NCBI GenBank assembly: GCA_907165135.1
Contig: OU015568.1
Location: forward strand, 13,764,001-13,828,000
Source: Oikopleura dioica
Taxonomy: Eukaryota; Animalia; Chordata
DNA: 64,000 bases
Direction of reading: 5' to 3'
Part shown: in pieces, positions 13,341 to 56,388 of the stretch
Numbering within the stretch: position 1 is the first letter of the stretch
Layout: every line of letters begins with the position of its first letter
The notes under the pieces: generated by a model
Databases searched by the model: none
What the model was told of the DNA's origin: nothing
What the model saw: the letters and a program-made list of their open reading frames with translations, nothing else
Made by a program: the position numbers and the translations under genes

Positions 13341-14851
<1,511 letters not shown>

Positions 14852-15575
14852 AGTAGTTATAGTAGTGACTGACCATTTGATAATTTTTCTGGGAGTCGAT
14901 TGGTAGAGAGCAGTGGAGCACTGAACCATGGTACGCATGGCTCAGTGCGGGGTGAAGGCCCCTCAGGGCCTTCTTGCCAGTCATCAGACACCAAAATGAG
15001 AGCATTAACACCACCACCAAAGTGCAGATGCACATGCATTACATGCATGCACCATCTTACACTATAGGGCGGCGTGATTTTCAGTCCACTCCACTGTAGC
15101 GCTTTTCTAATGGTCAGTCACTACTATTTCGCCTATTAAATAAAAAAAATTATTTTAAACGCACTATCCCCCATTTCTAACGCTACTGAACGTTTTTATG
15201 CTATCCCCTTACTCTTAACTTATCTCTAACCCTAACAAAGCTACGTTTAGAAAAAGAAAATACGCTAACTTGTGCTTATGCCCCGCTTCTCTTCGCTGCA
15301 CCGACCAGCGCTCCAATCCCAGCGCGCCATTCGGAGCGCAGATCCACGCTCAAGGATTAACTCGCCTTCCCCCCGCCTCCGCTCTTTCTTCCGGTTAGTC
15401 ATCTTCCTCTAGAACATTCTATCCATCGATTCTCTCGAACATTCTTTCTCACCATTGATTTTTAGCTCTGCCCGCCCGCCCCGCGCCGCGTCAACAACAA
15501 CGACGACTTCTTATCACGCTGCTGCCGCTGCTGAATTATCTGCTGGACGCTCAATCTTTTCTCACTAGCCAAACA
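14852..15575 (+). repeat. Left terminal inverted repeat of the Maverick (724 bp)
   Basis: Reverse complement of 55664-56388. The only differences I noticed are one substitution and a 1-bp homopolymer difference near the inner end. Confidence 0.95.
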
Positions 15576-15615
15576 TTTATTTCTCTAAATTTTATTTTGG
15601 TAAGTCAACAAGGTA

Positions 15616-15789
15616 TTACGGTGGGATGGTTGTAAAACGGTGGGGGAAAAGTTCTTCGTCGCTATAAATTGGGGGAAGGTTTGTGATCACAATGAAGACA
15701 ACGGCGGCGAAAGTAGCAGACATTAGCACGCAAAAGCAACATCCGAGTATGATGCTTTCCAGGACAACTTGAATAATATTGGTAGCCAT
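15616..15789 (-). CDS. Small hydrophobic (1 TM) hypothetical protein
   Basis: MATNIIQVVLESIILGCCFCVLMSATFAAVVFIVITNLPP...; ATG at 15789 within ORF 15616-15888. Confidence 0.4.
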   Translation of the reverse strand: MATNIIQVVLESIILGCCFCVLMSATFAAVVFIVITNLPPIYSDEELFPHRFTTIPP

Positions 15790-16612
15790 TTTGCTTGTTT
15801 TTGTTTTTTCAGTTTTGCAAATTTTATACTCGAAAGAAACATTTTGCGTGTTATATGTTCTTTCGCAGGTGCGGTCCAACTGGTGCACCTCTGCATTTTA
15901 TGCAATCAGCCGCCACTTATCGACCTCTCCTACCAAACAAAGTACTTTTGGGTTAAGTACCTCTTTGATGTTTTAGCTACAGGTCTTTCTCACTATTAAT
16001 TTTAGCTTTGCCCGCGTCGCGCTGCACTGCCAACAAGAACGATTTCTTATCACGCTGCCTGGGCGCTCAACCTTTTCCCACAAGCCAAACACCGTAATAC
16101 CTTTCACTGCCTAAATCCTCCTATCTTTCAATAAAACCAAATATACTTGAACAAATGAAACATTTTAACATCGGTTCGTTTTCTTGACGCAAGCATCAAT
16201 CTCAATAGTAATTTTACGGCCCTGATTTCCAGCGCACATTTTCTCGCGCCCTTGGATATAACTTTCAATGAATCGATGGCGTAAGCTCTGCCTTCAAATA
16301 CGATGGCCCGCATCTTTCGATTTTACTTTAGACTTTTCACAAGGAAACGATTTCACAGTCCTTATTTTTCGCATATATAACCGCAGAGCTAAGTAAAGAC
16401 TCTACACTTTTAAAATGCTCCTTTAGCTGCAATAACGAAATCGCTACAGAGTTTTATTGTCAATTAAAAATATGATTTTTTGAAATGTCCAGCAAGATCA
16501 GGAAACACAATGGCAATGCCACTACAACGAGCTTAAATAAGAGAAAATAAAAATTATAAAAAGTAAGTCCTTCATGATTTCAACCATCTCTAAAGGGTTC
16601 TTCAGAAAAAAA

Positions 16613-17359
16613 TAAAATGACCACAGAAGATATACCGACATCTGAAGACTTTCCAGAGAGATAATTAACTTTATAAAATGAATAATCTAAAGCTCACCTG
16701 AATCCTTTGAAGTGCTCACTAATTGTTTTTTAGAAATGAATATTTATAAAATGTATCGTTTCTTTTTTCGATTTTTCATTGATCCGAACAGTTGTCCAGA
16801 ATATAAAATGTTTCGTGATTTTTCTTTGACTTTGGATAATGCTTTACTAGAACTTAAAATGAAACTAAAATATTTCCTAATTAGTTGTAGAAATACTGAA
16901 TTTATTTGTAAATTTAAAATGAATTCTAATTTTTTACTCGTGCGAGTGTAATGCCGAACTAATATAAAATGAAACTCAAAAGTTTCTCATTTTCTTGAGG
17001 AAGAATCGAATCTGTAATTCAACAAAAATGTTTTAAACTTTATAAAATGCGCCACGATTTCTTATGACTTTTAAATAATCATAGAGACTTTCTTTATTAA
17101 AATGATGCTTGAAAATTTCTGATAAATCGAACTTAATCCACAATTGAAAATAAAATGAACCTTTATTAATGCAACGTGCGTGATAGACAACCTCTTTAAA
17201 ATGAAGCTTAATGTAGGTAAATGATGAATAAAGCAAGGTTATCAAAATAAAATGACTCTGTATCAATGCAATTTGCGTAGTAAATACAATTTATATTAAA
17301 ATAAAATGAATCCACACTGTCATTCTCATTCATCCTTAGATATATTCGAATTTAAAATG
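16613..17359 (+). repeat. Array of 14 TAAAATG motifs with non-repetitive spacers (46-78 bp period)
   Basis: The motif ATG falls at 16617, 16678, 16751, 16808, 16859, 16919, 16969, 17047, 17102, 17155, 17201, 17252, 17306 and 17357. Confidence 0.85.
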
Positions 17360-17561
17360 AAACTAAAGTTGTAATTCTTTTTCGCCGTTTAACGAAATCA
17401 TTTTGAATATAATGATACTTAATTTCTACTAGTCTTTGAATCTCAAATGAAGCTTTATGATCGATCACATATTGAACAATCTGCATTTTCTTAAAAAACT
17501 TTCAAATAAACTTTTAATTTTGAAATTTGCAAATTATTTTTATTTGCAGGAATGAATGAGT

Positions 17562-17885
17562 TTATATGTTATGTACAGTGACTATTTGCAGTTGAATGTT
17601 ATTTACAGTTTCTTCTGAAGCCTTTTTGCAGTGGGCAACAAGTGTTCGAAGAAGTGTAGCGAAAATGATGATCCAGAAAATGTGGAAGGCAAGTGTGATC
17701 CAAAATGAAGTAATTACAAATGCAGCGAAAATGGCCAAAAGAGCAAATGAGAGGATTCCAAACTTGATAATGTCGGTCATCTTCTTCTTTCTTCTTTCTT
17801 CTTTTTCTGAAAACAAGATTTTTTGATTTAATGAATTCTGAAATTTCTCCGCCCTTAAATGTAGACTTTCCAGCTGTTTATGCAA
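17562..17885 (-). CDS. Small membrane protein, hypothetical
   Basis: Long hydrophobic stretch IIKFGILSFALLAIFAAFVITSFWITLAFHIFWIIIFATLL (1-2 TM). Confidence 0.45.
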   Translation of the reverse strand: MHKQLESLHLRAEKFQNSLNQKILFSEKEERRKKKMTDIIKFGILSFALLAIFAAFVITSFWITLAFHIFWIIIFATLLRTLVAHCKKASEETVNNIQLQIVTVHNI

Positions 17886-18993: not shown

Positions 18994-20061
18994 ATGGTAA
19001 GTTATTATTCGTCTTTATTTTTATGAAATAATTTAAAATAACTGTGGCTCATATTTATTCGATTTTCTAGCGAACACGATCCATCTCATCTCGGTTTTCT
19101 CGGTTGAGCTCAAATCTCCGGGAAGCCGAGCGACATCTTCGTACCTTAAGGCTCGAAATCTTCGGCAGCGAGGCTTCTTCTGACTCTCCAAGCTCCACCA
19201 CGGATGTCGACATGTCCGACAACGAAAATTCTCGGGGGCTTCTAAAGTTTACCGAGTTGGGGTCGCTCAAGGACCGATCTCACCCCCTCGAGCAGCGATG
19301 GCGACTTCAGGCCCAACAACGAGAGACCCAAGAAAACGAGATTCTTCGTCAAGCGGCGGTGCTCCGAGACGAGCCGATTGCGGAGGAAAATCGACGCGAC
19401 TTGCTTAATCGACTCGACCAGCGAAACCGACGATCTCAGCAGGCTGGTCCTTCAAGCGAGGAGCCTACTGAAACCGAGCAAGCTCGTCAAGGTCCAAGCC
19501 GGGGCGCGCGATTTGGCGAAAAAGGCGGCGTCGGTCCTGCTTTTACCCGGGGTATGAACGGAATCTTCAACACCATCGACGATGCTGCTCGTAATCCTGG
19601 CAAAGCGTTGCGAAAAGCCCTTACTCCGGGTAAAAAAACCCCGGGTAAAAAAACTCCTGCCAAGAAGACGCCAGGCCGTAAAACTCCTGGAAAGAAGAGT
19701 GCGAAGAAGCTGGCTGGCGCAATGGTCCGAGGTCGACGTAAGTTTATTCTTTTTTGACGCGTACTTATATTCTTTAGGGGAGAAATTCCAGCAACCCCCT
19801 CGTGACCAGAAGGATCACTGCGAAGAGCTTCCTGCCCAGTTAGTGGTGCGAATGTTGGGCGAGTATTTGTCCGTCGACGACCAGGAAATCTTGGCGGAGA
19901 AAGCGGCGGAGTTGGAAAGCGCCTTCGAACAGCGCTTCGGCACCTTTTGGGACGACGTCGTGTCTGGACGCTGCAGGGTCACGTTCTTGACGAAGGGCGG
20001 TAGATCCTGGAATGTCGACGGGCCCAAATGGGAAACCAACGCCGAAGAACAAGACGACTAA
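18994..20061 (+). CDS. Spliced ~317-aa protein with KKTPG-repeat tail and putative divergent histone H3/CenH3-like fold
   Basis: Exons 18994-18996 (ATG only), 19071-19737 and 19778-20061; both GTAAGT..AG introns join in frame. N-terminus MRTRS. The C-terminal RDQK..LPAQLVVR..LESAFEQRFGTFWDD..RVTFLTK aligns by eye with H3 RYQK..LPFQRLVR..LQEASEAYLVGLFED..RVTIMPK. Confidence 0.6.
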
Positions 20062-20364: not shown

Positions 20365-20595
20365 TTACTTTGGCGAGTCGGTGGCAGTGCTTAGTTCTAA
20401 TGTTAATATTTCAGTAAGTTTTCTTACATTTGGAATCAGATGTTCATAAAGCACCATTTCATCGTTCGCGCAGATAAATGCCAGTCGCACTGTATTGATA
20501 AACAGCCTGGATATGTAAATAAACGCTTTCATTTGGTCGAGATCTTGTGAAATTTTCTGGCGATATGCGCTAAGCTCCTGTTGAGTGTGACCCAT
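20365..20595 (-). CDS. Small hypothetical protein, paralog of 20720-21130
   Basis: Shares an E..AY......L..M..F...V..EH.IP pattern with the neighbouring gene. Confidence 0.55.
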   Translation of the reverse strand: MGHTQQELSAYRQKISQDLDQMKAFIYISRLFINTVRLAFICANDEMVLYEHLIPNVRKLTEILTLELSTATDSPK

Positions 20596-20719
20596 CTTGA
20601 AAAAAAATGGATTAATTTTTGAATTGGCCTATTTATTAAACTAGAAATCGTAAGCATGCAGAAATTTAACGAAAATTAGTCGGAAAAAGAGTGAACTAGA
20701 AAACTAAAGAGAGAAAGAA

Positions 20720-21130
20720 CTAAAATGAAGTGTTGATCAGGGTTAAATAGTAGCGGTCAAAAGCAGGGCGAAAATGGATCTTGAGGGTGTTTTCGAGTTC
20801 CTGCATTTGTTTTCGTATGTCGCGAACTTTCTTGCCGATATCGTCTTCTCGCTTATCAGCGCCTTCCCACATGCGCTGGTCAAACATGGCTTTCATATCG
20901 TCCAAGCGTTTGCAGTGCTAAAAATAAATAACAAAAGTTCCGTTTATCCGCTCTTTTACCTCAGGTATTTTGTGTTCATGAAAGACGATTTTCTCTGGCC
21001 AGACAGCGCTCATGAATTCAATTTCGTCCACAAAGTCTTGTGTGTAAATTCGAAAATCACGCATCTTCCTCAATCCTCTCGTATATTGATCTTCGTACGC
21101 AGCTCGCTCTTCATCAGTTAGGTCGGCCAT
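20720..21130 (-). CDS. Spliced small helical hypothetical protein
   Basis: A 42-bp GT-AG intron at 20918-20959 joins ..EHKIPE to HCKRLDDMKAMF.. in frame. Confidence 0.65.
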
Positions 21131-21354
21131 CTTGAAAGACTGGTGGCATCTGAATTTCGCTCGGCCTTTTATACTCCGACTTGATTTATCGTGAATATCT
21201 TTGAAAAAAGCGCGATTTTTGATTTAGTCATCGGTTTAGCTTTTTCCAACTTTGAGCGAAAAGTAAAATTCTTCGTATAATAAAAAAGTGGCGCCCGAGG
21301 GGAGCGCTCGTCTCGTAGTTCTATTTTCTTTTTACTAGCTTTCATTTTGTAAAC

Positions 21355-22451
21355 ATGTTGATTAAAAGCTTGGAGTTTTTTGAAGACGTAAAAGCGGACT
21401 TTCCTTGTTTTATGGTTGAGAATTCTAATCGTCATTGTCACAATCCGATTCTCCAAACCGTCAAATCTTTGGGCGTTCTAAAGAAACTGCAGCGAATTTC
21501 TTTCTTTATTGAAAGTTATTTCAACAAGGAAACAAACAGAATAGAGAATAGAGTAGTTGTAAGACAACACGAATGGCTTATTGAGTACTCGCCTTCTTTT
21601 TGTGTTCATCAGATGTATCTAAATAAGATATATGATAATTTACCATCAATGACTTCTTACGGTGTAACTTCAAGCGGATGCCCAGCAGTAAACTTCGGTC
21701 GGCGGAAGGTTATGGATCACATGTGCAAAGTGCAGCGCGAGTTCATCTATGATCGCAACTTACCTGAAGGATTTTTTTGCAACATTCAGAAGGTTATTTA
21801 TCCGAATTTGAAAGAGGTCTTTTTCTCATTGAATCCTGGCAAAAATTGTGATTACCCTTTTCGCATACTTCTCGTTTTATATGGACAGCTCTGGGCTCGA
21901 TCTTTGTTGGAGAAAGATTCACGTTTTCAAACTTTGGACAATCAACCTGACGTCAAAGCAATTGACCATTTTATCGAAAATCTTTTAAAAGAAATCGGAA
22001 TTCCTCATGATGAAATTTACCCTCAACTAGCGCCGCAGGATGAATTTCTGTATCATATTACAATCTGTAGATTAGTTTATGGAAGTTATTACAGATTAGC
22101 GTGCCATCGAATGGCGTATTATTTTGGAAGCGTCTATTCTTCTATGCCGTGGTTTGGAAGCAAGCAAATGTTTCGACGATATATTCAAGACCTAGAAGAA
22201 AAAGCGATGGCTTGCGGTTATACTTTCGTGAGTTTTCTTTTTTCGATGCTTCAATAACGATTAAGTTTCATCCGTTCTTCCTTACGACTAGTGAAGCGTC
22301 CGATATTGCGGCTGATTCTTACGTTCCTCGGCAGGAAGTTAGAAAATTCAATATCTTCAGGAAAATAGCCTTCGAACAATCAAGACCTGCATCTGTTATC
22401 GTTGATCGTGAATGTTTTGATGATATCATTGATTTGTATAGGCATAATTAG
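21355..22451 (+). CDS. Hypothetical protein, tandem paralog A (spliced)
   Basis: 300-aa ORF plus a 38-bp intron at 22228-22265 joining in frame to FHPFF..FRKIAFEQ. Shares REFIY..YPNL..Y.Q.WAR.L.E.D with paralog B. Confidence 0.75.
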
Positions 22452-22563: not shown

Positions 22564-23521
22564 ATGAAAAAAATTTATGAAGAATATACTAGTAATAAAC
22601 TGCATCAATATGATGTTGGAGTCGTGGTTACCCATCAGAATCGATTTCAAAGCGATCAGCCCATTCTTTACGAGTTTTTGTGCAGCGGGGTTACTAGCGT
22701 GTCGTCAAAAATTATGTTTTTTGTAAAAGAGAATATTGACGAAAAAACTGGTACACGGTCTTCTTCGATAGTTATCAGACAAGTTGAGGACTGTATTTCA
22801 CCTGGACCGCCTTCAAATATTCATTCGTCGCCTAACGAGCTGGTAAAAATTAAAAAGAAAACCGTTAAAGAATTTTTGAACGATCGACTTCAAGAAGACG
22901 CGACTTACTGCTTAGGTTATAAAAAAATAAAGAATGGAGTTATCAAGCGGGAATTCATTTACGAAAACAAGAAATTATCGTGTACCGTTCAATGCTACAA
23001 ATATCCAAATCTTACCGTATTTTTTCGAAATTTGAACTTGTTTGGCAAAGCTTTCTTATGTGAAAAGGCGTTATATGCTGCATACGCTCAAATCTGGGCG
23101 CGAGGACTTATGGAAATGGACCCTGCGTACGCGTCGGATAAAAAGAAGATTGATGAGCGCGTTTTTTCTCTATGTCGTGCGGCTCAGATGAAATCTAGTG
23201 AATACATGGTATCAAAAATGGGCGAAGTTACTGTGCATTTTTATTATGTCACTGCAAAAATGTTTCTCCAGCGCGATCGAGGCCAATATTTTGGAGACAA
23301 CAAGGACCTTGGCGAGAAATGGATTGCCCTGCTCAATAGTAAATGTGAGTTTTTTTTTGAAATTTTATTAACTTTATCTAGGGCCAACTCCTGCACTTGA
23401 GCACAATTCGTTCCCCCTGCACTTCCGGAAATATCTTGCTGAACAAAGATGCTGCTGTGCAAACGAAGAATGCGATCAAAGATTTTGCTCCCATAAAGAA
23501 ATGCCGTGTGTTTTTATGTAA
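22564..23521 (+). CDS. Hypothetical protein, tandem paralog B (spliced, Cys-rich C-terminus)
   Basis: 278-aa ORF plus a 37-bp intron at 23345-23381 joining in frame to WPTPALEH..FRKYLAEQRCCCANEEC. Confidence 0.75.
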
Positions 23522-23564: not shown

Positions 23565-24304
23565 CTATTGTGACAGGCCAAACATCCATGGTGCACCACC
23601 CAATCCATCCACCTCTCCGAAGTAATTCGTAATTACTCTTGGTTGATCCGCGTGTCGGACGTCACGTTGAAGTATGATGTAATTGTAGTTGGGGATTCTT
23701 CGTTCTTTGAAGAGCTTCATGGCTTGATTGTAAGGCTCGACCAAGCCGCATTTAGTTGCAATCGTTTTGTTAATTCCACAGTCCGTATGATTGTTCATTA
23801 GAACAAAACTTGTCATGCAGTTTCTAAAAGGAGCGGTTAATTTAAAAAAACATAAAAAATATTGAAGACAAACCTTGCAGTAATGGCCTTTTTGCCCTTC
23901 TCATAAAAATTCTGGGCTATAAAGGCTAACGAGACACCCAAATGTCTACGCCCGTAGGAAAGTAAATATTCACAAGTATCACTTTCAACTGAAGACGACC
24001 ATAAATCGTCTACGACTATTAGGCTTTTACTGTCCGCCTCTATTTGAAAAGTGTCGTCTACCCACTCTCGTGAGGGAAGCCCTTCCATTAGATACAGTTG
24101 TTGGTTACTATGAGGGGTAATATGGAGCGGCTCTAGACGCGGCATAAAATAATATATAGATTCAATATCGCCGTTGATTCCGTCACACTCAATTAGGTTT
24201 TTTACAAAATTACTTTTACCTGTGCCGGTCGAGCCTGCAATAAGCAGTGAACAGGGATGACGGAAGCGAAAGTCGGGGACGAGTTTCGTTAAATGTTGAT
24301 GCAT
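23565..24304 (-). CDS. A32-like (FtsK/HerA) genome-packaging ATPase, 2 exons
   Basis: Walker A GSTGTGKS, Walker B LIVVDD, and the RRH.GVS..FIAQN motif. A 50-bp intron at 23824-23873 restores ITAR|NCMTSFVL. Confidence 0.92.
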
Positions 24305-24675
24305 TTTACGAAAGCGACTTCAAATTGGCCGGCAATCCTTCCTGGGTAGTTCGGAGCGTTGGTGTCTGGCGGCGTGTATCCGTTGATACAGACAATGAGA
24401 GTTTTGTCCTGAAGATCAGTAAGTAGACCTGTCGGCTCGTAGAAGTAATTTCGAATTTCCGCTTCTTCTTGATTCCAATTCCTCGGATTGAAATGAAAGA
24501 AAGCTTCGCGATTTGTTTCCAATTTCTCTTGGCCTGGAAAGTTTATATCTCCAAGCTCAAATTTCTTGATTTTTCCGGTGACCTTGTGAGTTCCGCCGCT
24601 AAGCCAATTTTGGACGTTCAAGTTGTCAATTTTGACTTGAGTATAAGATTCAGCTCTTTTCGCTAGTTCGTCCAT
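24289..24675 (-). CDS. Hypothetical protein, 128 aa, overlapping the ATPase start
   Basis: ATG-initiated ORF with a TATAAAA ~35 bp upstream on the minus strand. Its stop lies inside the first ATPase codons. Confidence 0.65.
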   Translation of the reverse strand: MDELAKRAESYTQVKIDNLNVQNWLSGGTHKVTGKIKKFELGDINFPGQEKLETNREAFFHFNPRNWNQEEAEIRNYFYEPTGLLTDLQDKTLIVCINGYTPPDTNAPNYPGRIAGQFEVAFVKCINI

Positions 24676-24884
24676 TGTTCTGACGATTCTAATTACGGTC
24701 TCTCGCTTTTATACTTCTGTTTTCATGTTTCCGCTAAAGGGCGCTCGCGCCGCGCGTATAAAACCGGATACCGTAACAATTTACCTTTAATCTTATTATT
24801 GTTCCTTTTCAAGTGACAACAAAAAAAGAAAATCAATTATCCAGGTATTTATGCACGAAACTTTTATGTTAATCTGGGATTAAT

Positions 24885-29427: not shown

Positions 29428-29548
29428 CGACTCCACAGAAGGCGCTGCGAGTTAGACTCATTGGTTTCTTTTTTGATGCTACTCTCTGCTGACATATATT
29501 CTATATAACGCTTACTGTGAATAAATCTCGTTGTAATACTTTTATCTT

Positions 29549-44353: not shown

Positions 44354-44442
44354 CCCCTTTCAATTGTCTAAAGTAATAAGATTTAATAATAAAATCGGAA
44401 AAAACAGATGTTACGTCAGAAAGTACTGGAAAAACAGTCTGT

Positions 44443-45593
44443 TTACATCGAAAATTTTTTAAAGCTCCTCGTCAGAGGAGACAAGAGCAATTCGTGAACC
44501 GTTTTTGGGACGACAATCTCGTCTTCGCTGCTTGTCGATGGGCAATCCAAGCGGAAGTCGGCGCCGGAACGGTCTTCTTCGTCGCTCATGTATTTTGCAG
44601 GAGCATCGTCACTGCTTATGTAAACAACCTGGGAGTTGTTATTGTTGCTGTCCTCCATCGTGGCCGAAGTTGCCTTTTCTTCATCGCCGCTGTCGTCCTT
44701 GTGGTCTGGCAGTCGACGAACGGGCTTGGACTTGAATTGCGTTTCAAGGAACGGTGAGGAGTCGTCGCCCAAGACCTTTAGAATCGATGGTGATTGCGCC
44801 TTGAAAGCTGTGATAATTTCGTGTCGATATTTGACAGCGAAGGGCAAAACTTTTTCAAGTTTTGAAGATTGAGGAAATACCTCAAATGCGTGCGCCTTGA
44901 AGAACTTTGCAGGGATCGGAGAAGATAGGCCAAACTTAATTTGATTTTAATTATAGTTTCATAAAATTTTAAAAACGTACCAATGCAAGAAAAGCCCCAT
45001 CTTCACTGGCAGGTGTCTGCGAGGCGCGGAGAAGGTAGATTTGAATCGCCTCATTTGTCGGGATATAATCGACGTTTTCTTGAAAAACCTCCGGAAGTAC
45101 GGAGCGAAGGTTTTTCAGCATATCAAGGAATGTAGCGGATCCTCGATACTCCGTTGAGTGGACACGGTCGCGGCCCAAGTACTGGTCCATTCGATCCCGA
45201 AGAATAGCAAAACGCTCAAAAAGCGTCACATCGTCATTCTCCGAGCTGTCAAGAAAGGCCGTCATTTCGTGATCTGGTAGGGCTCTGATCCCTTTGAAGA
45301 GCTTTAGCTCAATTGAGTCGGATAACGCCTGGATTTGCGCTGGCGCGGACTGTCGGTAAATTTCGTCGGCTCGGCCAAGAACAGCGAGGATCTAGAATAG
45401 AAATAAGAAGCCATTCATAAAATCAATGTTACCTCTGGCGCAGGAGCGACCATTTTAGCTGGAGGTTCCGTCGGTAACGGAACAAAGTCGAGCGCCAAAA
45501 GAAGTCGAGCCTTATCCACGGCGAAATTGTCCTTGAAAAAGGTGGGCCATGGGAAGTACGGCTTCATCTTCAACTCGTTGATGGCCATCATGA
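44443..45593 (-). CDS. Multi-exon hypothetical protein
   Basis: Short GT-AG introns join ..MVAPAPE|ILAVLGRADE.. and ..FLAL|FGLSSP.. in frame through ORFs 44969-45265 and 44443-44847. Start position approximate. Confidence 0.55.
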
Positions 45594-46914
45594 CAATCGA
45601 CGGCGGACCGAGCTCTGGATCGTTGATGTCCAGAAGTTTCCAGTTTTCGCCCCCGAATCGAACCTATTATCGTTAATATTTTTTTCAAAAGAATTAGCTT
45701 ACCCAAACATAGAGTACTTCAATGCACAAGTTGTCGGCGAGGTCCTGAGAAAATTGTGCGTGAAAACCCGCCAAAACTTCCCACGACTTTTTCGGCCCAG
45801 CGTATTTACCGGGCTTCGTCCAGTACTTGTCATCCTCGATGTTCTCGATTTGCGCGGCAATTACTTTTTGACGAATGATCTCGACATCGTCAGACTCGCC
45901 CTCGACAAGTACAGCAGAACGTTGAAGAAACTTGCCAACAGTCGTTTCGGCAAGAGTGGGACGAAGACCGCGGACGCTATCCGCAGCGGTAGCATAGATT
46001 GTCTGGAGCTCGCGGCGATTCAAGCACCAAGAGCTTTTTTCTTCGGCGAAATCTTCAGCCGCTTTTTTTGACGACTCAGAAGTCATCGAACCGCCAAGAT
46101 CTTTTACAATCTTCTGTTCAAAACGGTCAACTTTGTGGTACAAAGGCGCGACCGTGCCCGCCTTGACGTCGATTTGAGACGGCTTCGCATCTTTACTCCA
46201 GCGCTTCTCGTCGACTCCAAATGGAAGACTCTTTTGCATTCCAACCGTTTTTTGGTCGAGTTGAGGAACACCACAGCGACTTGTGGACGGAACGGAATCG
46301 TCTTGACGGGTCGACATTGGCGTAAAAATCAACTCCGACTCAGAGTCGCCGTCTTGGTCAGAAGCTCGCGGAAGAGGCTTTTGACGGCACTTGTTCTCGC
46401 CAGCGTCAGTGCGAACGACGTAGCGAACGCCTCCATTATCCTCCTTGGCGACGATGAAGGACCGCTTTGGCTCGCAGGTAATCTCAACGATAGACGGACA
46501 TGTGTCTTCTCCGTTGAGCATTTTTTCGATTCGCTCCGCTTCATGCCAATTGAGTTTTAAGGAGGGGTGGGTAGCTCGGGCTTGGAATTCGCTAATGCTA
46601 GAAATCGGCACCTCCGGCGCGTGTTCCCACTCGTAGGGCAATCCAAAGCAGTCCTTGACGCCGATAAGGCCACGCCGCCGTGTTGGAGATGGCGAGTTTT
46701 TTCTATCAGCGAGCTTTTTAATCGCTTCAGGAACGATCTTTTTTAGGCTTACTTTGACGATTTTCAAATTCAAAAAAGCATAAAAGCGAACCCCATTCCT
46801 TTTTTTCACGTCGCTGACGTCGCGGCGGTGTTTCAGCAACAGGAAGATTGTCAAATCTGACGCGGCGAGAAGCTTTTGATTGCTTCTTTTTCGAAATTCG
46901 AAGAGGTGGCTCAA
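45512..46914 (-). CDS. Hypothetical protein (>=450 aa, spliced; 5' end unresolved)
   Basis: 406-codon ORF ending LYVW|GTAAGC; a short intron joins it in frame to VRFGGENWKLLD.. (ORF 45512-45706). Confidence 0.6.
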
Positions 46915-48604
46915 AAAAGCCGCTGGTTCCAGATTTGAACGGGTCTGTAGGATGCTTACATGATCATGAAATTAAACTCATTAATCATCTAAAGCACCTT
47001 CCTTCAAGAGGCGACATCGGCGGTGGAGAAGAGTTTTTGGAGCCCTTCTTGAACTTCGGAGAAGGTGTTTTTTCATCCATCGAGCCCCTTCCGCGCTCGA
47101 TATACTCTCTTGGAGTAAGCTTGGTCGATTGAGCTTTTTTGGCTGTGGCCGGTTTTTTCTTTTTGCGATAACTTCCTTCGTCAAAAGAAAACATTCGATG
47201 TGTCTTAAGAGGAAAAGGTTTGTTAATCGTAAAATGTTGTGAAATCAAAAAGATCAAATTTCAATCAGTTGCAGTGAAAGTTTCAATTAAAACCACCGAA
47301 GACAGTAGAGAGCGGCAGTTATCAAATTCGTTTCGAATCTAGCGTTCGCCAAATTTGGCCTTGAGGTTGTCGACCACAAATGCGTATCGATCAATAGGCT
47401 TTGGCGAGTAATGAAGAGCGTCCAACGCCTCTCCAATAGTATTAGCCCCTAAAATATCAGTTAAAAAACGATCGCAAGTCAAAGCCCACCTTGAGTCTTT
47501 ATGAATTCCTCGTTGGACATGAAACCACCGAATGGAACGAGAACCCCTCGACCCTTGATGATTCGTGGAGTGCGGGCGGCAACCGGTGTTATATCCTGAG
47601 CAAGGAGTTCACTCACTCGCTGTGGCGGCGCCGGAGTTTTTGGTGAATTGAGTCGAAGGGGAGGCGGCGGTGTTTTCGCGGAAATGACCTCTTGTTCCAA
47701 AGCCCTATATTTCGACGGCGTTAGCTCGAAAGTGGCAGTGTAAGCACCCATCAAAATGGAAGTTGTCAATTTCGGAGGGTGCTTGACGATTGCTAAACAA
47801 AGTCAAGTTACGATTTTTTAATAAAAGACACTTACCTTTTGCAGCATTTGCAGTTTTCTGACCCCACAAGATCGCTTTTTTCTTACATCGTTTGACGATG
47901 TTACGCTTCTTTTTTTCGGGAGAGATTCGAGTCGCGTTGGGGGAGTAGCGCGGGGAGGAAACTCGCTTCCGTTTTCCAGCTAAACTTGTTAGTTCTAATC
48001 CTTGTGATGAAAAGTACCTCGAGTTTCGAAAACAACGGGCAATTTCGGTCGTGGCAGTGTTGCAAAAGGCGCGCCGCTAGCGGCCTTTTCTGCTTTAGCA
48101 AAAAGCGCTCTAAGCAAATAAAATGACAAATGGGCGCTTTTGAATAATTTACCTCGCGCTTTCATGCGCTACAGATTTGACTACATCCGGAACAGGCGCC
48201 TTTTTTAATCCAGTTTTTATCCAATTTGGAATTGGAGTTCCTGGCCGCACATTAGCCTTTTTCTTGCCCATTGCTGAAAATTACAGAATAAAAACGCGAA
48301 ACAATGAAAATGTAAAAGCTTCATTGACGTAACAGATCGAAATAACAGTCGGCCGAATAGAAGCAAAAGCGACAGTTCAGTCAAAAACTACTGAACTGTT
48401 GGAGTGTAGGCGAAGGGTTCATTAAAAGGGCAGTAATAATTTTAGATCATGATGGCATCAATAACGTAGAAAGGTGCAGTTAAATGAATTTAAGGGTGGG
48501 AAGCTGATAAGTTTCAATGTGAGCAGAGAAATTTTATGAAGCGTTAATTTAAATGCAGTTTAGGAATATCGAGATACACCAGTACTTAGTATTTCTGACG
48601 GCGC

Positions 48605-49666
48605 TTAAACTTCGTCGTCGTCGTTGATGGGGAGAGTGTACTCAACTAAAATTTATGTTTAGAGAAAATCAAACGAAACTGTTTTTACCTTCTGGAACTG
48701 AGCCCCAGAAATCGTCTCCGCTTCCAATGTCGTTCTCTCCGAATGGCTCGAGAATAGTAACTCCTAATGCGTGTAATAATTTCCATAAGCGTTTGAGATA
48801 TTTACCTGGATCGACAAAAAGGTCGGAGTCTTCGTTGATCTCAGCAAAGCCAGAACCAAAAGTGGTTGTCCGTCGAGAAGTTGTCACCGTCGCCATTGTA
48901 GTTGTCAGAGGCAAACTACCACCGCTTCCACCTCCACTGCCGTCGCTGCTGCCTCCGTTGTCCCCGCGGTGATTCTCGTCTTCGTCCTTGAGAAGAACCG
49001 CGCTGAGAAGATCGAGCAAGTCGCGGGCCAATTCCAACTCAATGTCCGCCGCACTTTTCACCTGTTGCCCGTTGACGGAGATGGTGTAGTGGTCAGCGTT
49101 ACAGACGGGGCGCTCGTTCGGTGTTTCCAACGAAATAGCCCAGCCATTATCGCGCGGATCGAAAGAGCAGGAGCAAAGGAAATCGGGTGTAGAAAGCGAT
49201 CGGCGGCGTCGATGCTGGTTTGACGGGCGACTCATCCCTCCAACGTCGTTGCCAAGGGTTGGCAAACACTGCTGGGCTGAAGCGAAAAGCACGTAGACAG
49301 CAACGCCGCAAAGTCCGCTAGCGAGCATCGAAACCAAAAGACACGCTAGGTCAAAGCGAGCAGCTCCGCCGCAGTTGTTGACCTAATGAAAAATTAAAAA
49401 AAAATTCGTTAAATTTCATTTAATACCCGCTTTGGAGATGGACGAGGAAGGGATCGACGGAAAGACGTAGCTTGGGGAGAAGATGGTGTAGCCGGCGCCT
49501 GGAAACGACCAGCGCCGATAGGCTCTGGAAGACAACCAGGCTGCGGAACGGGCTGCTGAGCGGTGACGAAACTTGTTGTTTCATACCCGAGTACAGCAGG
49601 CTCGCCTACTGGTCGGGCGTTACCTTCATTATGACCTTGATGGTCACTCGCTTTAGCAGCTTGCAT
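48605..49666 (-). CDS. Putative type II membrane protein with a furin-like RRRR site, 3 exons
   Basis: Introns at 49383-49426 (44 bp) and 48646-48688 (43 bp) join in frame. Pro-rich N-tail, TM LACLLVSMLASGLCGVAVYVLFA, then HRRRR|SL, a Cys-containing segment and a Gly/Ser/Thr linker. Confidence 0.65.
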
Positions 49667-50349
49667 CGAACTATTATTTACATAATTTCATATCTCTCAA
49701 TTCTTACTTACCGAAGCGGTACACTCGGTTTCGCGAAGGAAAAATCGTCAAGCGTTCTTGCGCTCGGGGTCGGGGAGAGACGTACGCTCGATGCTCGACT
49801 CGAACTCGCTGGCGGGAAAACGACAGATGCACGTGGAGTTCCCGGTTGGGAGCCATCATAAGCGAACATAAACTCTCTTACGCCAACGAGTCTGAAAAAA
49901 GGGAGGAACTATCATAAACGTAGGCCGGCGTCGATATCGGTTGTATTAGTTTGCGTGAGAAAAATTAATGTTGATAGCGGTCAGTAAGAAGAATTTTCTC
50001 TCCGATTTTAACTTCCTTCTCTTATTCATAAATTCATTCTTCGCGCTGATTTGATAAGCAGATTTTCCCATGTGCGCACAAAAAACCTCCACAATTTTGA
50101 AAATCAAATTCTCGAAATGAAACACTGCACTTCTGGAAATGATTTTCGCCGCTCGCCGACTGATCACGCCACGCTCCCGCTCACGCTTTTTTCTTTTCTA
50201 GATTGCTCACATTAACGAATTATCAAACATTTTCACTCAAGCCGCATTTTTCAAACCGCAAGTTAAAATTAATAGATTAGACGTAACTGAATAATAAAGA
50301 AGTTTTTATTTGACAGCTGAAAATTCTGAGAGAATTGAAAAGTAAATTT

Positions 50350-51232
50350 TCAAGGTTCGAGCGCGTACGCAGGAAGTTCATCGTGCTCGGGCTCTCGGTC
50401 TGGATCAGTCTTCTTGAGATCCGCGATTCCGAACTGGATGTTTCCAACTGGAAGCAGATGGGATTCGCTTTCGATAATCACCCCAAATTCGCCCCGCTTT
50501 AACTCGTTTTCCAGCTCTTCCATTTCGTGGGCTCGATTTCGGAAGAGTTTATCCAAAATACGAAGCATTCGACCAATGTCGTCGCCACTGCCCTCGTACA
50601 CTAAATTTTTATAAATAGAAAACAATTTAAAAACTTACATGACTCGTTGAACTTGAGCCACCCGTGGCTCGTGCTGCAGAATCGGGCGTACACAGGGCGA
50701 AAAAACCAACGGCCAACGTCGCCGGCTTTTCCACTCGCGTAACGAATGACTTCTGCAGGATTGTTTCGGCTTTTCTTCTTGATGAGGCCCTTGTACAGGA
50801 TTGCGTGCTTGGCACGTCGTGGCCCTACATCCTCAATAAAAGCCTGGTCGAGCTCGCCACCGTCCGAGGACTCATCCGTATCAAAATATAGTTGCCGATA
50901 AGCACGAGACGGTTGCGCAGCTTCAATGGGAAGACGGTTTTCTCCACCGACGATAGTGTCTTCTAGAGCAGAATCGTTAGCGGCGACGGTTTGATTTCCT
51001 ACGAAGAAGGAATCGAGAGGGTCCAAACTGTGCACCTCAAGGTATTCTCGAGGGGAGAGAGGGGAGATTCAGGTGGAAGACCGCGGTACGGTTTAGGTGG
51101 GGTTTTTGGCGTGCGGTCTCGGTGTTGCGGCTGCTGCTCTTTCGCTGCGCTTGCTGTAATATTTTTATAAAAGCACGTTTTTCTCGAATTCATACCTTCT
51201 TCCGGGCCATCACGCAAGATAAAAACGACCAC
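50350..51232 (-). CDS. Spliced hypothetical protein
   Basis: ORF 50601-51035 ends at a GTAAGT donor with a short AT-rich intron before the frame of 50350-50625. 5' end unresolved. Confidence 0.5.
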
Positions 51233-51943
51233 AAGTGTCTTGTTTCGCGGCTGTCAAACACAAAACTGAACAAAGCGTCGATCTACGGCTGCTTTTATAG
51301 ATTTGCCTGAGAAAAACACTGCTTTCTAGAGAAATTTTAACGCGTTTTGCAAAGATAAGTTTAAACAACTAGAAATTTTTTGTTTGAGTTGTATTGACAA
51401 AACAGTAAAAAAATAAAAGTTGAAATAGAAAGAGTTTTAACTGATCCCTACAACAGTAACTGTTCATAATTCAACTAAGCGAAATTGAGGTTTTCTTGGC
51501 GGCCTAGCTGATAGGTCGAAGCTGATCTTATAAAAATGAAATTGTCAAAACTGATACTAATACTACTGAAGTCGAAGATTATTCACGGATACATTTCACA
51601 ATTTTACACACTGGCTGTAAATGAAAGTAAATTTAGTTGTAGAGTAGATTCGAGCGTTGTTTACTAAAATAGCGAGAAACATTGTTACGATTACTGGCTA
51701 GACATTCTCCTGACTTAATATTTAACCTGTAATCAAAAAGGAAAACCAAAATGAAATTGCAATGTGCACCAGATAGTTCAATTAAATTTAGCACCAATTT
51801 GTTCACTGAAAATGAGCAACTGAAAAACTATAATGAAAATGAAATAAAAATGTTTTAACAAAAAAATAAAAAAAAATAGCAGAAATCAACAAGGACTTTA
51901 TGCTTTTGGCAAGTAATTTACCAAAAATTATATTTTCGATTCT

Positions 51944-53305
51944 TCATTCTAATGACTCTTCATTCTCCGATGTGTCGTTTTCCTCCATCTGTTTCAATTG
52001 AGCGGAAATGACTTTGCCGATAAAAGAACACGGATGAGTAGGAAGACTTTCACCATAGATTTCGTAGTCATGTTTGTTACCACCGTCGTTTCCCACCGAT
52101 GATGAAGTAGATCCTCTTGTCCGCTCCCTGCACTCCTGCAAATAACTCTTTCGAAACAGTTCGTCAAATATCGCACCATCTTTTCCAGCAAAAAGAGCAG
52201 CGCGCTTACAATCGTTGATATCCTTTAGTTTAAGAGGGATCCCACATTTCACCTTGTATTCGGCTTCGGTTTTGCACAAAACGTACAATATTTTACAAGA
52301 AGCAGTTCCAACGGGGTCCTTGTCTTTGATTGTTTTCAACATGTTGTGAAATTCAAAAGTCCGTCGAGAACAGTTGGCTTCAGGCTTTTCATTGTCGGCA
52401 ATTTTCAAACCTTCGAAAGCTCCAGAAATAACATCCTCTTTATCATTTAGAATGGGATTATCTACTGATAAAGAAGACGCGGACTCGGAGTTCGGAATCG
52501 TTGATGATTGCAGTCCAGGCGCGAGGGAATTGCCGTCGTCGTCTAACTTGCGTTTGCGATGGGCCCCATCTGAGCACATTAAATAGTCTCCATCCGCAGC
52601 TCCAGCAGAGTAGAACTGCTCAACAAGCAGCAAAAGACGTGCGCAAGAAAGGTTCAATTCGTGAGAAAGCGCGTCAAAGATAGCTAGAAATAGGTAAGTG
52701 ATTAATTGAACGAAAGCACCTTGCTCATTCTGAAGAGCTAGATCCGCCGCCGCAAAGTCGTCAAACTGCTTCATTTCCTCGCGCTTTCCTAAAAAAACTC
52801 GCTGAAGAATGGCAATACACTTTTTGCCATCATTAAGCGAGTAGTGCATAAAGTAAAGTTGCCAGGTAAGCTCGCTGAATATATTTCAATTTTCAGCGCA
52901 AGAAAAAATTGCGCCCTCATCGATCAACGAAAGCGCGCCTGATCAAGAGCGTATTTAATTCTCATCAGCGCCATACTTGACGAGAATGGGTAAATATGAT
53001 TGAGCTTTGAGAAAGTGACAAAAAGCTCTGCATTGCCTTGCTTGACAACGTTTTTACTCAATATAGGCAAGGGTTGGAGCTATCTTGTCAAGTTCACAAA
53101 CGACAATATTATGAAATACATTCCCCTGTGTCCAGTGATATAATTCTAAATAATACTGAACACGGGGAATGATTAAATATAATTGAACACTCGACTTACC
53201 CGCTTCAGCTAAAACATTCCATAAGGGCAAACTTGCCCAAGCCGTAGAAAGTGATTCAAGTCGCTGAGCAAAATTCTCGTGCTCCTTTTTCGACGACATA
53301 ATCAA
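51944..53305 (-). CDS. Hypothetical protein (301-aa exon plus probable upstream exon)
   Basis: ORFs 51944-52849 (with an RKRK NLS-like motif) and 53054-53305; the junction is unresolved. Confidence 0.5.
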
Positions 53306-53443
53306 ATTGTCGCGATATTCTATAAATTCCTTCTTTTTAAAATCGATTCCTAAAAGAGAGCTCCCCTAACAGCTCCATTTAGTGGCATCAAGTGCGCCAA
53401 TGTAAAGTAGAATAAAAACATCGGTAAAGTAGAGTGTTGAACA

Positions 53444-53947
53444 TAAAATGAATAATGAGCTCGAGAAAAATAAAATGACTCGGTATATAAAAACGTTTAT
53501 TTTTATAATGATTTTTAGCGACAACAAGTCTACCGGCTTGATCTTCCTCCTTTGAACCTGCAAAGATGAAAAGAAAACTACTCAGAAACTTTAATAAATG
53601 AATCGTAAAATGAACCTTCAATTCTTGCGTCGAATATTTTCTCACGAACGTGTTCTGTAGTAAATTATTAAAATGCTGTCAAAACCAGATAAACTCCATA
53701 ATGATTTCTTTATACCTAAATTAAATGAAACGTTAATCCATTCACCTGTTTCCTCCTTAATATCCCAGATAACTATAATAAATGAAACGTAAAAGTAAGT
53801 CATTACATCCTATTGACAACGATGAAAACGTGTGAATACTTAAATAAAATGATCCATAAATAAGGAACTTGACTATAAATTCTCGGATGAGATAAAATGA
53901 AGCTAAAATTGTACAACCCGAAACACTGTGGATAAACTCATAAAATG
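53444..53947 (+). repeat. Second array of TAAA(A)TG motifs (~9 copies) with unique spacers
   Basis: The motif ATG falls at 53448, 53475, 53610, 53673, 53725, 53782, 53849, 53897 and 53945. Same strand as the left array. Confidence 0.7.
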
Positions 53948-54052
53948 AAACCAAAAAAAAACTGATTTTCTTCTATTCGTAAAATTCGAATAAATACTGT
54001 ATTAATCTATATAAGCGGCTGATTCTTTTGTTTCCGTCAGACATAAAAAAAC

Positions 54053-54311
54053 ATGAAGAGAGGTAAGAGCTTATTTTGGAATTTATTTTTAACGCTTAGG
54101 CCGAAACGGAGAGTTTAAACTCGGGCTCAGAGAAAATACACTGAAAGCCTTTAACATTCCAATAATAGATGATTCTGTTTTTGAGGATTTAGCCAGACGA
54201 CTACGCCAGTTTCATATTAACTGGCGTTTGGACGAATCATCAGACGAAGAAATAGAAAACATGGATTACTTTGTTAACAACGCCACATCTACCAGTATGG
54301 ATTGGAAATAA
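54053..54311 (+). CDS. Small spliced acidic protein, 73 aa (not in the ORF track)
   Basis: TATATAA at ~54008 and ATG at 54053. A 37-bp GTAAGA..TTAG intron at 54063-54099 gives an open frame MKRGRNGEFKLG..ESSDEEIE..DWK*. Confidence 0.6.
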
Positions 54312-54568
54312 ATTTGAATAAACATTGAAAACCCATTTATCATCGACAACTGAAAGCAAAATAAATAAATAGAAGAGAGAGGTTTAAAATTAACTGTAGC
54401 TTATAAAACATTTTCTTTAAAATGAAAACAGTTTTCTTTAAATCATCTGAATCCACTTTGCCAATGAAATAAATACGACAAAATAAAATTTTATCTTTGT
54501 ATTTTTAAATTAAAGAGAAGGGAAACAAGAAAGAATACATATTAGAGCAGAATGGCAGTGAGTGTTTT

Positions 54569-54922
54569 TTAGTAGTAACGAGAAGCGCTACGGTAGCGGA
54601 CAGAGTAGGATCTTCGGATGGTGGCATACTTCAGTGTTTCGTCAGAGAACTGGGAGTGCATTGGAGGCTCTTCTTTCGTAGTCATCGCAGCTAATCCGAC
54701 AGATTTTGGGTAGGGTGGTGGCGGGCAATGAAGGACTGAGTTGACAGAAGCTTTTGTCATGGCGCCGAGATTGGTCTTGGTATTTGTATCGATCCAAAGA
54801 GCTCTCTGGTTAATTTCCTTGATTGGGTATTGATACGAGACGAATTGTTTCTTGAAGAAGCTGACCATCTTTTTCGCGACTCCCTTTTTCTTTGGCTTAA
54901 CTTGCTCGATTGGTACAATCAT
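54569..54922 (-). CDS. Small basic hypothetical protein, 117 aa
   Basis: ATG-initiated ORF; no domain recognised. Confidence 0.45.
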   Translation of the reverse strand: MIVPIEQVKPKKKGVAKKMVSFFKKQFVSYQYPIKEINQRALWIDTNTKTNLGAMTKASVNSVLHCPPPPYPKSVGLAAMTTKEEPPMHSQFSDETLKYATIRRSYSVRYRSASRYY

Positions 54923-55251
54923 GTTGCTGTGTTTGATACCTGTTGCAAGAAAGTAGTGGTTTTATATGGACTCTGGAGCTGAGTGCGCCAACTAGGTGCC
55001 TCAGAAGGATCAAACGAGCCGCCAACAAGTACTGCCGAAAGATAAATCACACCGCCATAAAACAATAACAATATCCGGCGATATCAGTTGTGCTTTCCCA
55101 AGATCGCACTTGATTTTGATAGATAAACAAGGTGCGAATAAATCTGATGTTATTTCAACTGTAAAATTGGAGATACACAAATTGATATTCAATTTGTCGG
55201 AACTAATTAAGATTCTAGATCAAACCAAGAGCAGCTGACAACTCTCGCTCA

Positions 55252-55485
55252 ATGAACATCTGCGCTATAAAAAGGTTGACCCTGGCTCCAAAATTTCATA
55301 AAACAAAAAATCAAATTTTCGAAAAAGCAAAAATGAATTTTTTCATCTTCGCCCTCGCTCTTCTCGTCCTCTTCTACATCTTCGCCATCGTTTGCGCTTT
55401 TGGCCTCCTCGCTGCTACCTGCTTTGTAATTGTCAAGTTCAACTTATTTTTTGCCAGCCTTATTCCTGCTTCTTTTGGAAAATAA
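55252..55485 (+). CDS. Small hydrophobic protein (1-2 TM)
   Basis: MNFFIFALALLVLFYIFAIVCAFGLLAATCFVIV from an internal ATG at ~55333, with a TATAAAA at ~55266. Confidence 0.45.
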   Translation: MNICAIKRLTLAPKFHKTKNQIFEKAKMNFFIFALALLVLFYIFAIVCAFGLLAATCFVIVKFNLFFASLIPASFGK

Positions 55486-55663
55486 ATTGTAAAAAAAAAT
55501 AAGATGTCCTTTTTAGAATTCTTCAAAAAAAATATAGAAACATTTTTAAAATATTCTCACACCCAATATCATTACGCAAATAATTCAGGCTGAGCTTCAT
55601 TTGTTCAAATATATTAGGTTTTATTGAATGATAGGAGGGTTTAGGCAGTGAAAGGGATTACGG

Positions 55664-56388
55664 TGTTTGGCTAGTGAGAAAAAGATTGAGCGCCCAGCAG
55701 ATAATTCAGCAGCGGCAGCAGCGTGATAAGAAGTCGTCGTTGTTGTTGACGCGGCGCGGGGCGGGCGGGCAGAGCTAAAAATCAATGGTGAGAAAGAATG
55801 TTCGAGAGAATCGATGGATAGAATGTTCTAGAGGAAGATGACTAACCGGAAGAAAGAGCGGAGGCGGGGGGAAGGCGAGTTAATCCTTGAGCGTGGATCT
55901 GCGCTCCGAATGGCGCGCTGGGATTGGAGCGCTGGTCGGTGCAGCGAAGAGAAGCGGGGCATAAGCACAAGTTAGCGTATTTTCTTTTTCTAAACGTAGC
56001 TTTGTTAGGGTTAGAGATAAGTTAAGAGTAAGGGGATAGCATAAAAACGTTCAGTAGCGTTAGAAATGGGGGATAGTGCGTTTAAAATAATTTTTTTTAT
56101 TTAATAGGCGAAATAGTAGTGACTGACCATTAGAAAAGCGCTACAGTGGAGTGGACTGAAAATCACGCCGCCCTATAGTGTAAGATGGTGCATGCATGTA
56201 ATGCATGTGCATCTGCACTTTGGTGGTGGTGTTAATGCTCTCATTTTGGTGTCTGATGACTGGCAAGAAGGCCCTGAGGGGCCTTCACCCCGCACTGAGC
56301 CATGCGTACCATGGTTCAGTGCTCCACTGCTCTCTACCAATCGACTCCCAGAAAAATTATCAAATGGTCAGTCACTACTATAACTACT
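55664..56388 (-). repeat. Right terminal inverted repeat of the Maverick (725 bp)
   Basis: Reverse complement of 14852-15575; ends ACTACT and is followed by the TSD ATCCTC. Confidence 0.95.

Follow-up and report, generated by a model that had tools for sequence, protein, structure and literature searches.

Mavericks, also called Polintons, have been put forward as vectors that could carry genes from one animal to another, and they are regarded as kin to the ancestors of many DNA viruses of eukaryotes. By definition, Polintons encode a protein-primed B-family DNA polymerase (pPolB) together with an rve integrase (PMC5499653). Intact vertebrate Mavericks span 12,723-24,620 bp, are intronless and carry eight conserved open reading frames (ORFs) that include a protease and a minor capsid protein (PMC8097293); a recent overview gives a length of 15-20 kb for Mavericks/Polintons in general. 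In the larvacean Oikopleura dioica, a pPolB has long been present in UniProt (Q66S32) and 'MAV' is a listed class in the annotation of transposable elements (PMC5240408). Beyond this class label, we found no description of the element reported here, or of any larvacean Maverick of its size, in the literature that could be searched. The element lies at positions 14852-56388 of a 64,000-nucleotide stretch of chromosome PAR of O. dioica OKI2018_I69 (contig OU015568.1, 13,764,001 to 13,828,000), the whole of which is referred to here as the window and whose coordinates are used throughout. We conclude that it is very probably one recent and unusually large Maverick/Polinton (Polintoviricetes), the product of a single 41.5-kb integration, with an accessory arm that we take to be carried by the element's own lineage.

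Comparison with the described systems leaves the kind of element in little doubt. It encodes a pPolB, an rve integrase, a double-jelly-roll capsid protein and a packaging ATPase of the A32/FtsK type, and it has long terminal inverted repeats (TIRs), AG...CT ends and a 6-bp target-site duplication (TSD), in agreement with the original prediction, made from the letters of the sequence, that a Maverick/Polinton was present. That prediction also put the element at about twice the usual size, and so it is: its 41,537 bp compare with the 12.7-24.6 kb of intact vertebrate Mavericks (PMC8097293) and exceed the 15-25 kb regarded as typical, a range that is descriptive rather than defining.

Ends, target site and the interrupted GH1 gene

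The element is delimited by the dominant inverted repeat pair of the region, in which the left TIR (14852-15560, plus strand) and the right TIR (55680-56388, minus strand) proved 100% complementary over 709 nt in a repeat finder. Alignment by blastn extends the repeats to 725 columns at 99.72% identity, where the departures are a mismatch and a single-base indel, both near the inner margin, and near-identity on the left reaches approximately 15575; the near-identical TIRs of ~724 bp that had been claimed for the element are therefore real. The element opens with AGTAGT and closes with ACTACT, both visible directly in the sequence as originally stated, and these provide the AG...CT ends of a Maverick. 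The terminal trinucleotide AGT, which occurs twice at the very ends, is reiterated ten bases further in, and a near-terminal 25-nt motif recurs in inverted form within the left TIR. Directly outside both ends stands a perfect TSD, ATCCTC, at 14846-14851 and 56389-56394.

The duplication gains its meaning from the host gene that surrounds it. On the minus strand of the right flank, the beginning of a coding exon (56395-56649) encodes a hydrophobic leader and enters a glycosyl hydrolase family 1 (GH1) domain at Pfam GH1 profile positions 3-27 (E 5e-8). On the minus strand of the left flank, the domain continues at positions 26-88 (E 2.4e-18). The two pieces share exactly two profile positions, Glu-Asp; read in reverse complement, ATCCTC codes for these two residues, and each flank has them once. 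Since the flanks are adjoining parts of one GH1 exon that overlap by just the two duplicated residues, the duplication is real and not a chance resemblance, and the perfect ATCCTC repeat of the original prediction is confirmed by an independent continuity of profile. The remaining host sequence on the left (13605-14851, minus strand; profile positions 26-88 and 130-391) is otherwise open, and the next GH1 exon, at 13605-14489, is still an open stretch of 295 codons (Pfam E 1.7e-55).

Because the host pieces abut and the remaining GH1 exon is still open, we conclude that the element landed in one event in the first coding exon of an otherwise intact GH1 glycosidase gene, and that the gene has not decayed since. 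The element integrated as one piece at a 6-bp staggered target cut, the signature of an rve integrase. The insertion is very young, as had been proposed earlier: the TIRs and the TSD are perfect and the split GH1 gene remains open.

The subterminal regions tie the two ends together. An AT-rich array at 16613-17360 contains 11 plus-strand copies of the 8-mer TAAAATGA, mostly 46-61 nt apart, and a second AT-rich array at 53444-54425 contains seven copies in the same orientation. Across the entire window, the 8-mer occurs 25 times on the plus strand and once on the minus strand, with 0.08 copies expected per subterminal region. Because the left 3 kb and the right 3 kb carry the same oriented array, both are parts of one element, and foreign material, if there is any, would have to be confined to ~36-53 kb. 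We also observed that the TAAAATGA arrays have equal orientation at the two ends, unlike the mirrored TIRs, and that no ORFs follow the motifs.

The two element ends are asymmetric just inside the perfect repeat. At the left end, an additional ~0.5 kb of sequence is accompanied by a second, diverged copy of the TIR inner edge (together 15561-16159), and neither is found at the right end. The diverged copy itself occupies 16010-16159 on the plus strand, ~0.5 kb inward, and its right-end counterpart is 55596-55797.

Core genes of the left half

Genes that appear split were searched piece by piece, here and in all the comparisons below. The pPolB gene (29549-35103, plus strand) consists of an N-terminal domain of ~500 aa and a polymerase, with one frame change between them. 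The polymerase part is uninterrupted, matches Pfam DNA_pol_B_2 (E 8.5e-14, 51.7 bits against a cut-off of 25.8) and retains 205 of the 221 columns that are invariant in six relatives; its family profile gave weak matches to Pol II and phi29 polymerase in the PDB. Four metagenome relatives of 1,685-1,879 aa hold the ~500-aa N-terminal domain and the polymerase in one uninterrupted ORF, and their N-terminal domain is 38-43% identical to the ORF just upstream of the element's polymerase, for which a PDB sequence search was blank. A fifth relative also starts near the polymerase part. Downstream of the polymerase, an ORF at 35393-36109 (plus strand) shares 48% identity with the C-terminal end of another O. 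dioica pPolB model, chr1.g1460, and likewise gave a blank PDB sequence search.

The rve (DDE) integrase gene (26089-27078, plus strand) scores beneath the Pfam rve cut-off (E 1.4e-5; 25.7 bits against 32.6) and contains one in-frame stop. Two relatives, one with rve and Chromo domains and one with an rve domain above the cut-off, align in a single frame over the whole gene (26089-27057), and the stop falls within a stretch of ~15 codons that is absent from both. In a third relative, at 58% identity, the ORF comes to its end just where that in the window does. The stop most likely lies in a short intron shared with a relative, because the stretch is missing from two relatives, the ORF end is common to a third, and its size is that of an intron in this genome, where the median is 49 bp (PMC8008620). 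The polymerase frame change is spanned by a short predicted intron in a public gene model; both it and the integrase stop look like short introns.

The 576-aa ORF at 27532-29262 (plus strand) is uninterrupted. A comparison with 5.8 billion clusters yielded only eight relatives (BLASTP identity 32-44%), and neither Pfam nor the PDB gave a sequence match. It spans these relatives from end to end and keeps 60 of their 62 invariant columns. An AlphaFold2 model built from nine sequences (pLDDT 65.7, pTM 0.64) returned double-jelly-roll capsid proteins as all 50 of its top 50 PDB fold matches, at modest TM-scores of 0.3-0.4. These were led by mavirus (6g45, E 1.4e-8), followed in order by African swine fever virus p72, Sputnik, Paramecium bursaria chlorella virus 1, iridovirus, faustovirus and PRD1 P3. 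Against BFVD, the model matched entries from nucleocytoplasmic large DNA viruses, virophages, MELD-viruses and adintoviruses. On the strength of its modelled fold, the ORF is the double-jelly-roll major capsid protein of the element.

A gene for an A32/FtsK-type packaging ATPase lies on the minus strand within the outer bounds 23568-24708 and has at least one interruption. Its ORF matches Pfam Pox_A32 (E 1.6e-5, 24.9 bits; cut-off 22.8) over profile positions 12-150 of 242, up to the end of the ORF, and also matches Adeno_IVa2 and the FtsK/HerA P-loops. A PHROGs scan of ten left-half ORFs gave FtsK/terminase P-loop matches for the ATPase and nothing else. Thus, the original prediction of core ORFs free of stops and frameshifts, spliceable introns apart, is supported in part: it stands for the capsid gene and the polymerase part, it would stand for the rest of the polymerase gene and for the integrase if the frame change and the stop are the short introns that they resemble, and the interrupted ATPase gene gives it no support. 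The activity that was also proposed for the copy is therefore at most possible. The closest relatives of the core genes are metagenome or read-archive sequences at 44-58% identity.

The polymerase ORF finds a 100% identical counterpart in the O. dioica model Oidioi.mRNA.OKI2018_I69.PAR.g12375, which is itself chimeric (27532-35100). Its 1,825 residues are composed of capsid codons 1-402, a short pre-polymerase piece and the polymerase ORF, with the capsid part joined to the polymerase over a false intron of ~2 kb; among the proteins returned, none is a separate model for the capsid. This public model, in fusing the capsid and polymerase genes at the locus, needs correction. At the end of the polymerase N-terminal domain, a 15-nt coding tandem repeat present eight times (30828-30947) encodes a short reiterated peptide.

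Further ORFs accompany the core. A very basic Lys/Pro-rich protein is encoded at 19071-19754 (plus strand); it has no family match and could be a DNA-binding core protein. Two tandem paralogues of no known family, a 300-aa ORF at 21355-22257 and a 278-aa ORF at 22564-23400 (both plus strand), are 25% identical (E 4e-13), and a PDB sequence search with one of them was blank. The protein encoded at 24885-26069 (plus strand) is rich in Lys, Arg, Glu and Ser, highly charged and likewise unmatched to any family; like the basic Lys/Pro-rich protein, it is of low complexity. In the interval that separates the basic-protein ORF from the tandem paralogues, two small paralogous ORF pieces on the minus strand at 20368-21223 (27% identity over 62 aa, E 4e-6) suggest a further small gene with an internal duplication.

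The accessory arm and competing explanations

The accessory arm occupies ~19.5 kb (36101-55595), and its long ORFs all read from the minus strand; a count of stop-to-stop ORFs with 120 aa or more gives 20 on the minus and seven on the plus strand. The arm therefore converges on the plus-strand core. GC content per 1-kb window rises from 0.38-0.40 before the arm to 0.42-0.51 in most arm windows. By ORF, GC at third codon positions (GC3) is 0.33-0.39 in the core genes, 0.38 in an 860-codon ORF of the proximal arm and 0.43-0.60 in the more distal arm ORFs. When ~29 ORF pieces from the arm were compared with Pfam, none reached a curated cut-off; the best matches, all sub-threshold, were to TMIE (E 0.002) and to a family of viral fusion glycoproteins (E 0.004), with two more at ~0.02. 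Hydrophobic segments occur at the start of, or within, several arm ORFs, and disorder-promoting residues are abundant in most. The original prediction left more than half of the element's length unassigned; about half of it proved to be without assignment.

A large multi-exon gene of the arm (36309-40338, minus strand) includes the 860-codon ORF, with a hydrophobic segment near the ORF start. Scored against all 1.84 billion representatives, the ORF has 11 relatives, in none of which a Pfam domain was found. The named relatives are all O. dioica models (PAR.g13028, PAR.g12697, chr1.g2860, chr1.g432/g433 and XSR.g17020) and represent five or more other loci of that species; the others are metagenome ORFs of up to 980 aa that are long and uninterrupted. 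Several pieces of PAR.g13028, in more than one frame, align in order along 36.5-40.2 kb at 39-66% identity, and hence we regard this interval as a multi-exon gene. PAR.g12697 unites homologues of the 860-codon ORF and of a 366-codon arm ORF at 29-49% identity, and so preserves the linkage within the arm at a second locus. PAR.g12377, another model of the present locus, maps to the arm. A fold for the 860-codon ORF was also attempted and set aside: the AlphaFold2 model from 11 sequences had a pLDDT of 49.5, and its best Foldseek match (E 1.5) is meaningless.

The other arm ORFs singled out here are shorter and are all on the minus strand. A 156-aa piece at 40615-41082 is the source of the fusion-glycoprotein match (PF24664; E 0.004, with 15.6 bits where the cut-off is 27). 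Some 0.3 such matches are expected by chance across ~70 pieces, and the resemblance, which is not significant after multiple testing, is at most a possible lead; a PDB sequence search with this piece was blank. The 366-aa ORF at 41869-42966, whose homologue forms part of PAR.g12697, has a hydrophobic N-terminus and is otherwise disorder-prone. Next come a small ORF with two hydrophobic segments (43169-43612) and another (43961-44353) whose N-terminus is hydrophobic and which contains Cys residues and a tract rich in Thr; by eye, the latter looks secreted or mucin-like. There follow an ORF of 406-425 aa with no Pfam or PDB match (45697-46971), one of 222-237 aa with a hydrophobic N-terminus and no match (48672-49382) and one of 301-313 aa with no match (51947-52885). 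PDB sequence searches were blank for three arm ORFs.

A number of observations weigh against our interpretation, and each has to be set beside the explanation that it would favor. One such explanation holds that a standard Maverick core of ~21 kb had, prior to the present insertion, captured ~15-19 kb of O. dioica chromosomal genes between its ends, the arm being passive host cargo. The arm is GC-richer than the core, most clearly so in its distal part, in the manner of captured cargo in nematode Mavericks, where high GC and intron-bearing genes also mark the cargo, though only over 2-5 kb; its genes look spliced; and the 860-codon ORF has its relatives annotated at no fewer than five other O. 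dioica loci, none of them adjacent by gene number to annotated pPolB or capsid relatives. We nonetheless judge passive capture unlikely, since a significant Pfam domain is found in none of the ~29 arm ORFs, unlike the flanking host genes, the 860-codon ORF has core-like GC3 and long uninterrupted metagenome relatives, and the linkage of two arm genes recurs at a second locus, where identity is only 29-49%, which suggests an old module. The same shift in composition near 36 kb, together with the flip in gene orientation, might instead betray a separate mobile element nested at 36-55 kb within an ordinary Maverick. This is highly improbable. Neither TIRs, long terminal repeats (LTRs) nor a flanking duplication occur in the stretch, blastn finds no DNA similarity between it and the rest of the window, and a layout of two convergent modules is normal for Mavericks (PMC8097293). 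The Pfam scan of the arm ORFs also found no reverse-transcriptase, transposase, recombinase or helicase domain, and none of the other ORFs scanned showed a reverse-transcriptase, transposase or helicase domain either. Within the element as a whole we found no internal inverted or direct repeats above chance, no TIR-like sequence inside the element and no tRNA or Rfam family. The original prediction had itself named a nested 36-55 kb insertion with its own TSD as the finding that would overturn it; we looked for one, and neither repeats nor a TSD nor mobility domains came to light. Two Mavericks fused tail to tail were also considered and rejected: in tblastn comparisons, relatives of the polymerase, capsid and integrase match nothing but the left half, and there is no internal TIR-like copy.

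Two further explanations concern the copy rather than the origin of the arm. It is possible, although we doubt it, that the recent insertion is of a defective copy that is not self-sufficient and relies on others. Of the 242 positions of the ATPase profile, the match reaches no further than 150, where the ORF ends, and the remainder of the domain was not found in neighboring frames. No penton (minor capsid) match was obtained from Pfam or PHROGs among the ORFs scanned, and comparison of the capsid profile with 127 ORFs of at least 80 aa by hhalign returned the capsid gene itself as the sole match. No peptidase family appeared in the ~70 ORF pieces scanned for an adenain-like cysteine protease, where a gene split into small exons could escape. 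Divergent penton and protease genes, for their part, easily elude sequence profiles, and 93-97% of the columns without variation among relatives are conserved in the core proteins. The polymerase frame change and the integrase stop do remain in the copy; the former is bridged by a short intron in the public model, and the latter sits in the ~15-codon stretch absent from two relatives and coincides with the ORF end of the 58%-identical one. The last explanation, that the 41.5-kb structure is a chimera or haplotype mixture produced by nanopore assembly, has very little to commend it. The element is close to the upper read-length limit of the assembly, in which 99% of the nanopore reads are shorter than 42.8 kb (PMC8008620), so that few reads span it whole, and a perfectly identical repeat pair of 709 nt can mislead assemblers. 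Yet the repeats, at 0.7 kb, are far below the typical read length, no internal repeats offer a site for a false join, and a random mis-join would not leave the ends abutting the halves of a single host exon, flanked by a 6-bp duplication that is perfect.

Outside the element, the flanks have features of their own. A palindrome of ~3.5 kb (56764-60312; arms 99-100% complementary) begins ~0.4 kb beyond the right end and holds two inverted 5S rRNA genes, at 57053-57171 on the plus and 59905-60023 on the minus strand, which fits the inverted 5S/spliced-leader repeat units known for O. dioica (PMC8008620). Downstream of it lies a host galactosyltransferase ORF on the minus strand (60704-61516; Pfam Galactosyl_T, E 2e-32). 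On the left, a tandem satellite of 190-192-bp period with at least seven copies occupies 1-1446 and continues past the window edge, AGCTC-type low-complexity blocks occur as direct and inverted repeats at 4905-5844, and a tandem repeat of 48-bp period is present in ~6 copies at 9323-9605.

A proposed life history and its relation to known systems

The single-unit Maverick that we favor suggests the following sequence of events. The rve integrase joined the element at either terminus to a target cut with a 6-bp stagger, located within the first coding exon of a secreted GH1 glycosidase gene; ATCCTC was thereby duplicated and the gene split. By analogy with Polintons, adenoviruses and phi29-like systems, replication probably proceeds from both ends by the protein-primed B-family polymerase, with its N-terminal part of ~500 aa as the predicted primer; the tandem AGT at the termini would suit priming by a terminal protein followed by sliding-back. 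An icosahedral capsid may be assembled and filled by the capsid protein and the A32-type ATPase, whose genes are present and whose functions are predicted. The arm is a set of orphan genes, partly with introns, partly membrane- or secreted-looking and largely disorder-prone, that we take to be carried by the element lineage; its proximal part is core-like in composition and its distal part GC-richer and cargo-like. We favor carriage by the lineage because the 860-codon ORF has core-like GC3 and long metagenome relatives, because PAR.g12697 retains the linkage, and because ~29 arm ORFs lack a significant Pfam match where two host flank ORFs match strongly. By analogy with nematode Mavericks, we think that the GC-richer distal arm is the portion likeliest to include host-captured genes.

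Several consequences follow from an element of this kind. Described intact animal Mavericks cluster at 13-25 kb, and here an integrated copy of 41.5 kb with perfect ends resides in a coding exon. The size limit for transposition and packaging in the family would then be above what is usually assumed, packaging of such a genome being a prediction. At 65-70 Mb, the O. dioica genome is the smallest known for any non-parasitic, non-extremophile animal (PMC8008620), and an extremely compact genome either tolerates a 41.5-kb element or has only just received it. The arm adds ~20 orphan genes whose linkage to a capsid-encoding element is traceable across larvacean assemblies, and surveys of presence/absence have in the insertion a marker that is ready for use. 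A bolder view, to which we give little credence at present, is that the element represents a distinct larvacean lineage of ~40-kb Polintoviricetes in which the arm is a conserved membrane, secreted or host-interaction module, perhaps with a fusion protein, and which still circulates in O. dioica, as the lack of decay around an exon-disrupting insertion suggests. Such a lineage would be intermediate in size and gene content between Maverick-Polintons of 15-20 kb and the ~45-kb end of the continuum of polinton-like viruses (PLVs) and Mriyaviruses.

Among described systems, the vertebrate Mavericks (Barreat & Katzourakis 2021, PMC8097293) share with the element a pPolB, rve integrase, ATPase, double-jelly-roll capsid protein, 6-bp TSD, TIRs (46-1,447 bp in vertebrates) and two gene modules in opposite orientation. 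The element differs from them in its 41.5 kb, its apparent short introns, the lack of a detected protease or penton and its ~19.5-kb accessory arm. Nematode Mavericks (Widen et al., bioRxiv 10.1101/2022.07.12.499685; PMC10748475) resemble it in having a GC-richer, poorly conserved, intron-bearing region within the TIRs and extra membrane-protein genes. Their cargo is only 2-5 kb, whereas the arm here is ~19.5 kb and is at the end opposite the integrase. Their core genes also include a herpesvirus-gB-like fusogen of at least 730 aa; the element has one weak, sub-threshold match to a fusion glycoprotein family, on a 156-aa piece. Adintoviruses and groups 1-2 of the Polintoviricetes (PMC8502044; bioRxiv 10.64898/2026.06.19.733378) are likewise animal-associated and possess a pPolB, rve and capsid module, and adintovirus and MELD-virus capsid models are among the fold matches of the element's capsid protein. 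Group 1 usually has a cysteine protease, which is not a defining character, and none was found in the element by Pfam scan.

PLVs have the capsid module with neither pPolB nor rve, and usually carry a helicase-polymerase fusion and a tyrosine recombinase instead; the presence of both pPolB and rve rules out this assignment. Mavirus, a protist virophage of ~19 kb that depends on a giant virus, does have a pPolB and an rve integrase. Its capsid protein is the best match of solved structure (6g45, E 1.4e-8), at a sequence identity of only ~9%, and nothing in the element suggests a dependence on giant viruses. The other Maverick-type genes of O. dioica (chr1.g1460, XSR.g14646 and Q66S32_OIKDI) come from the same host and include pPolB and capsid homologues; they belong to other lineages, since they are only 26-41% identical to the element's polymerase and 35% to its capsid protein.

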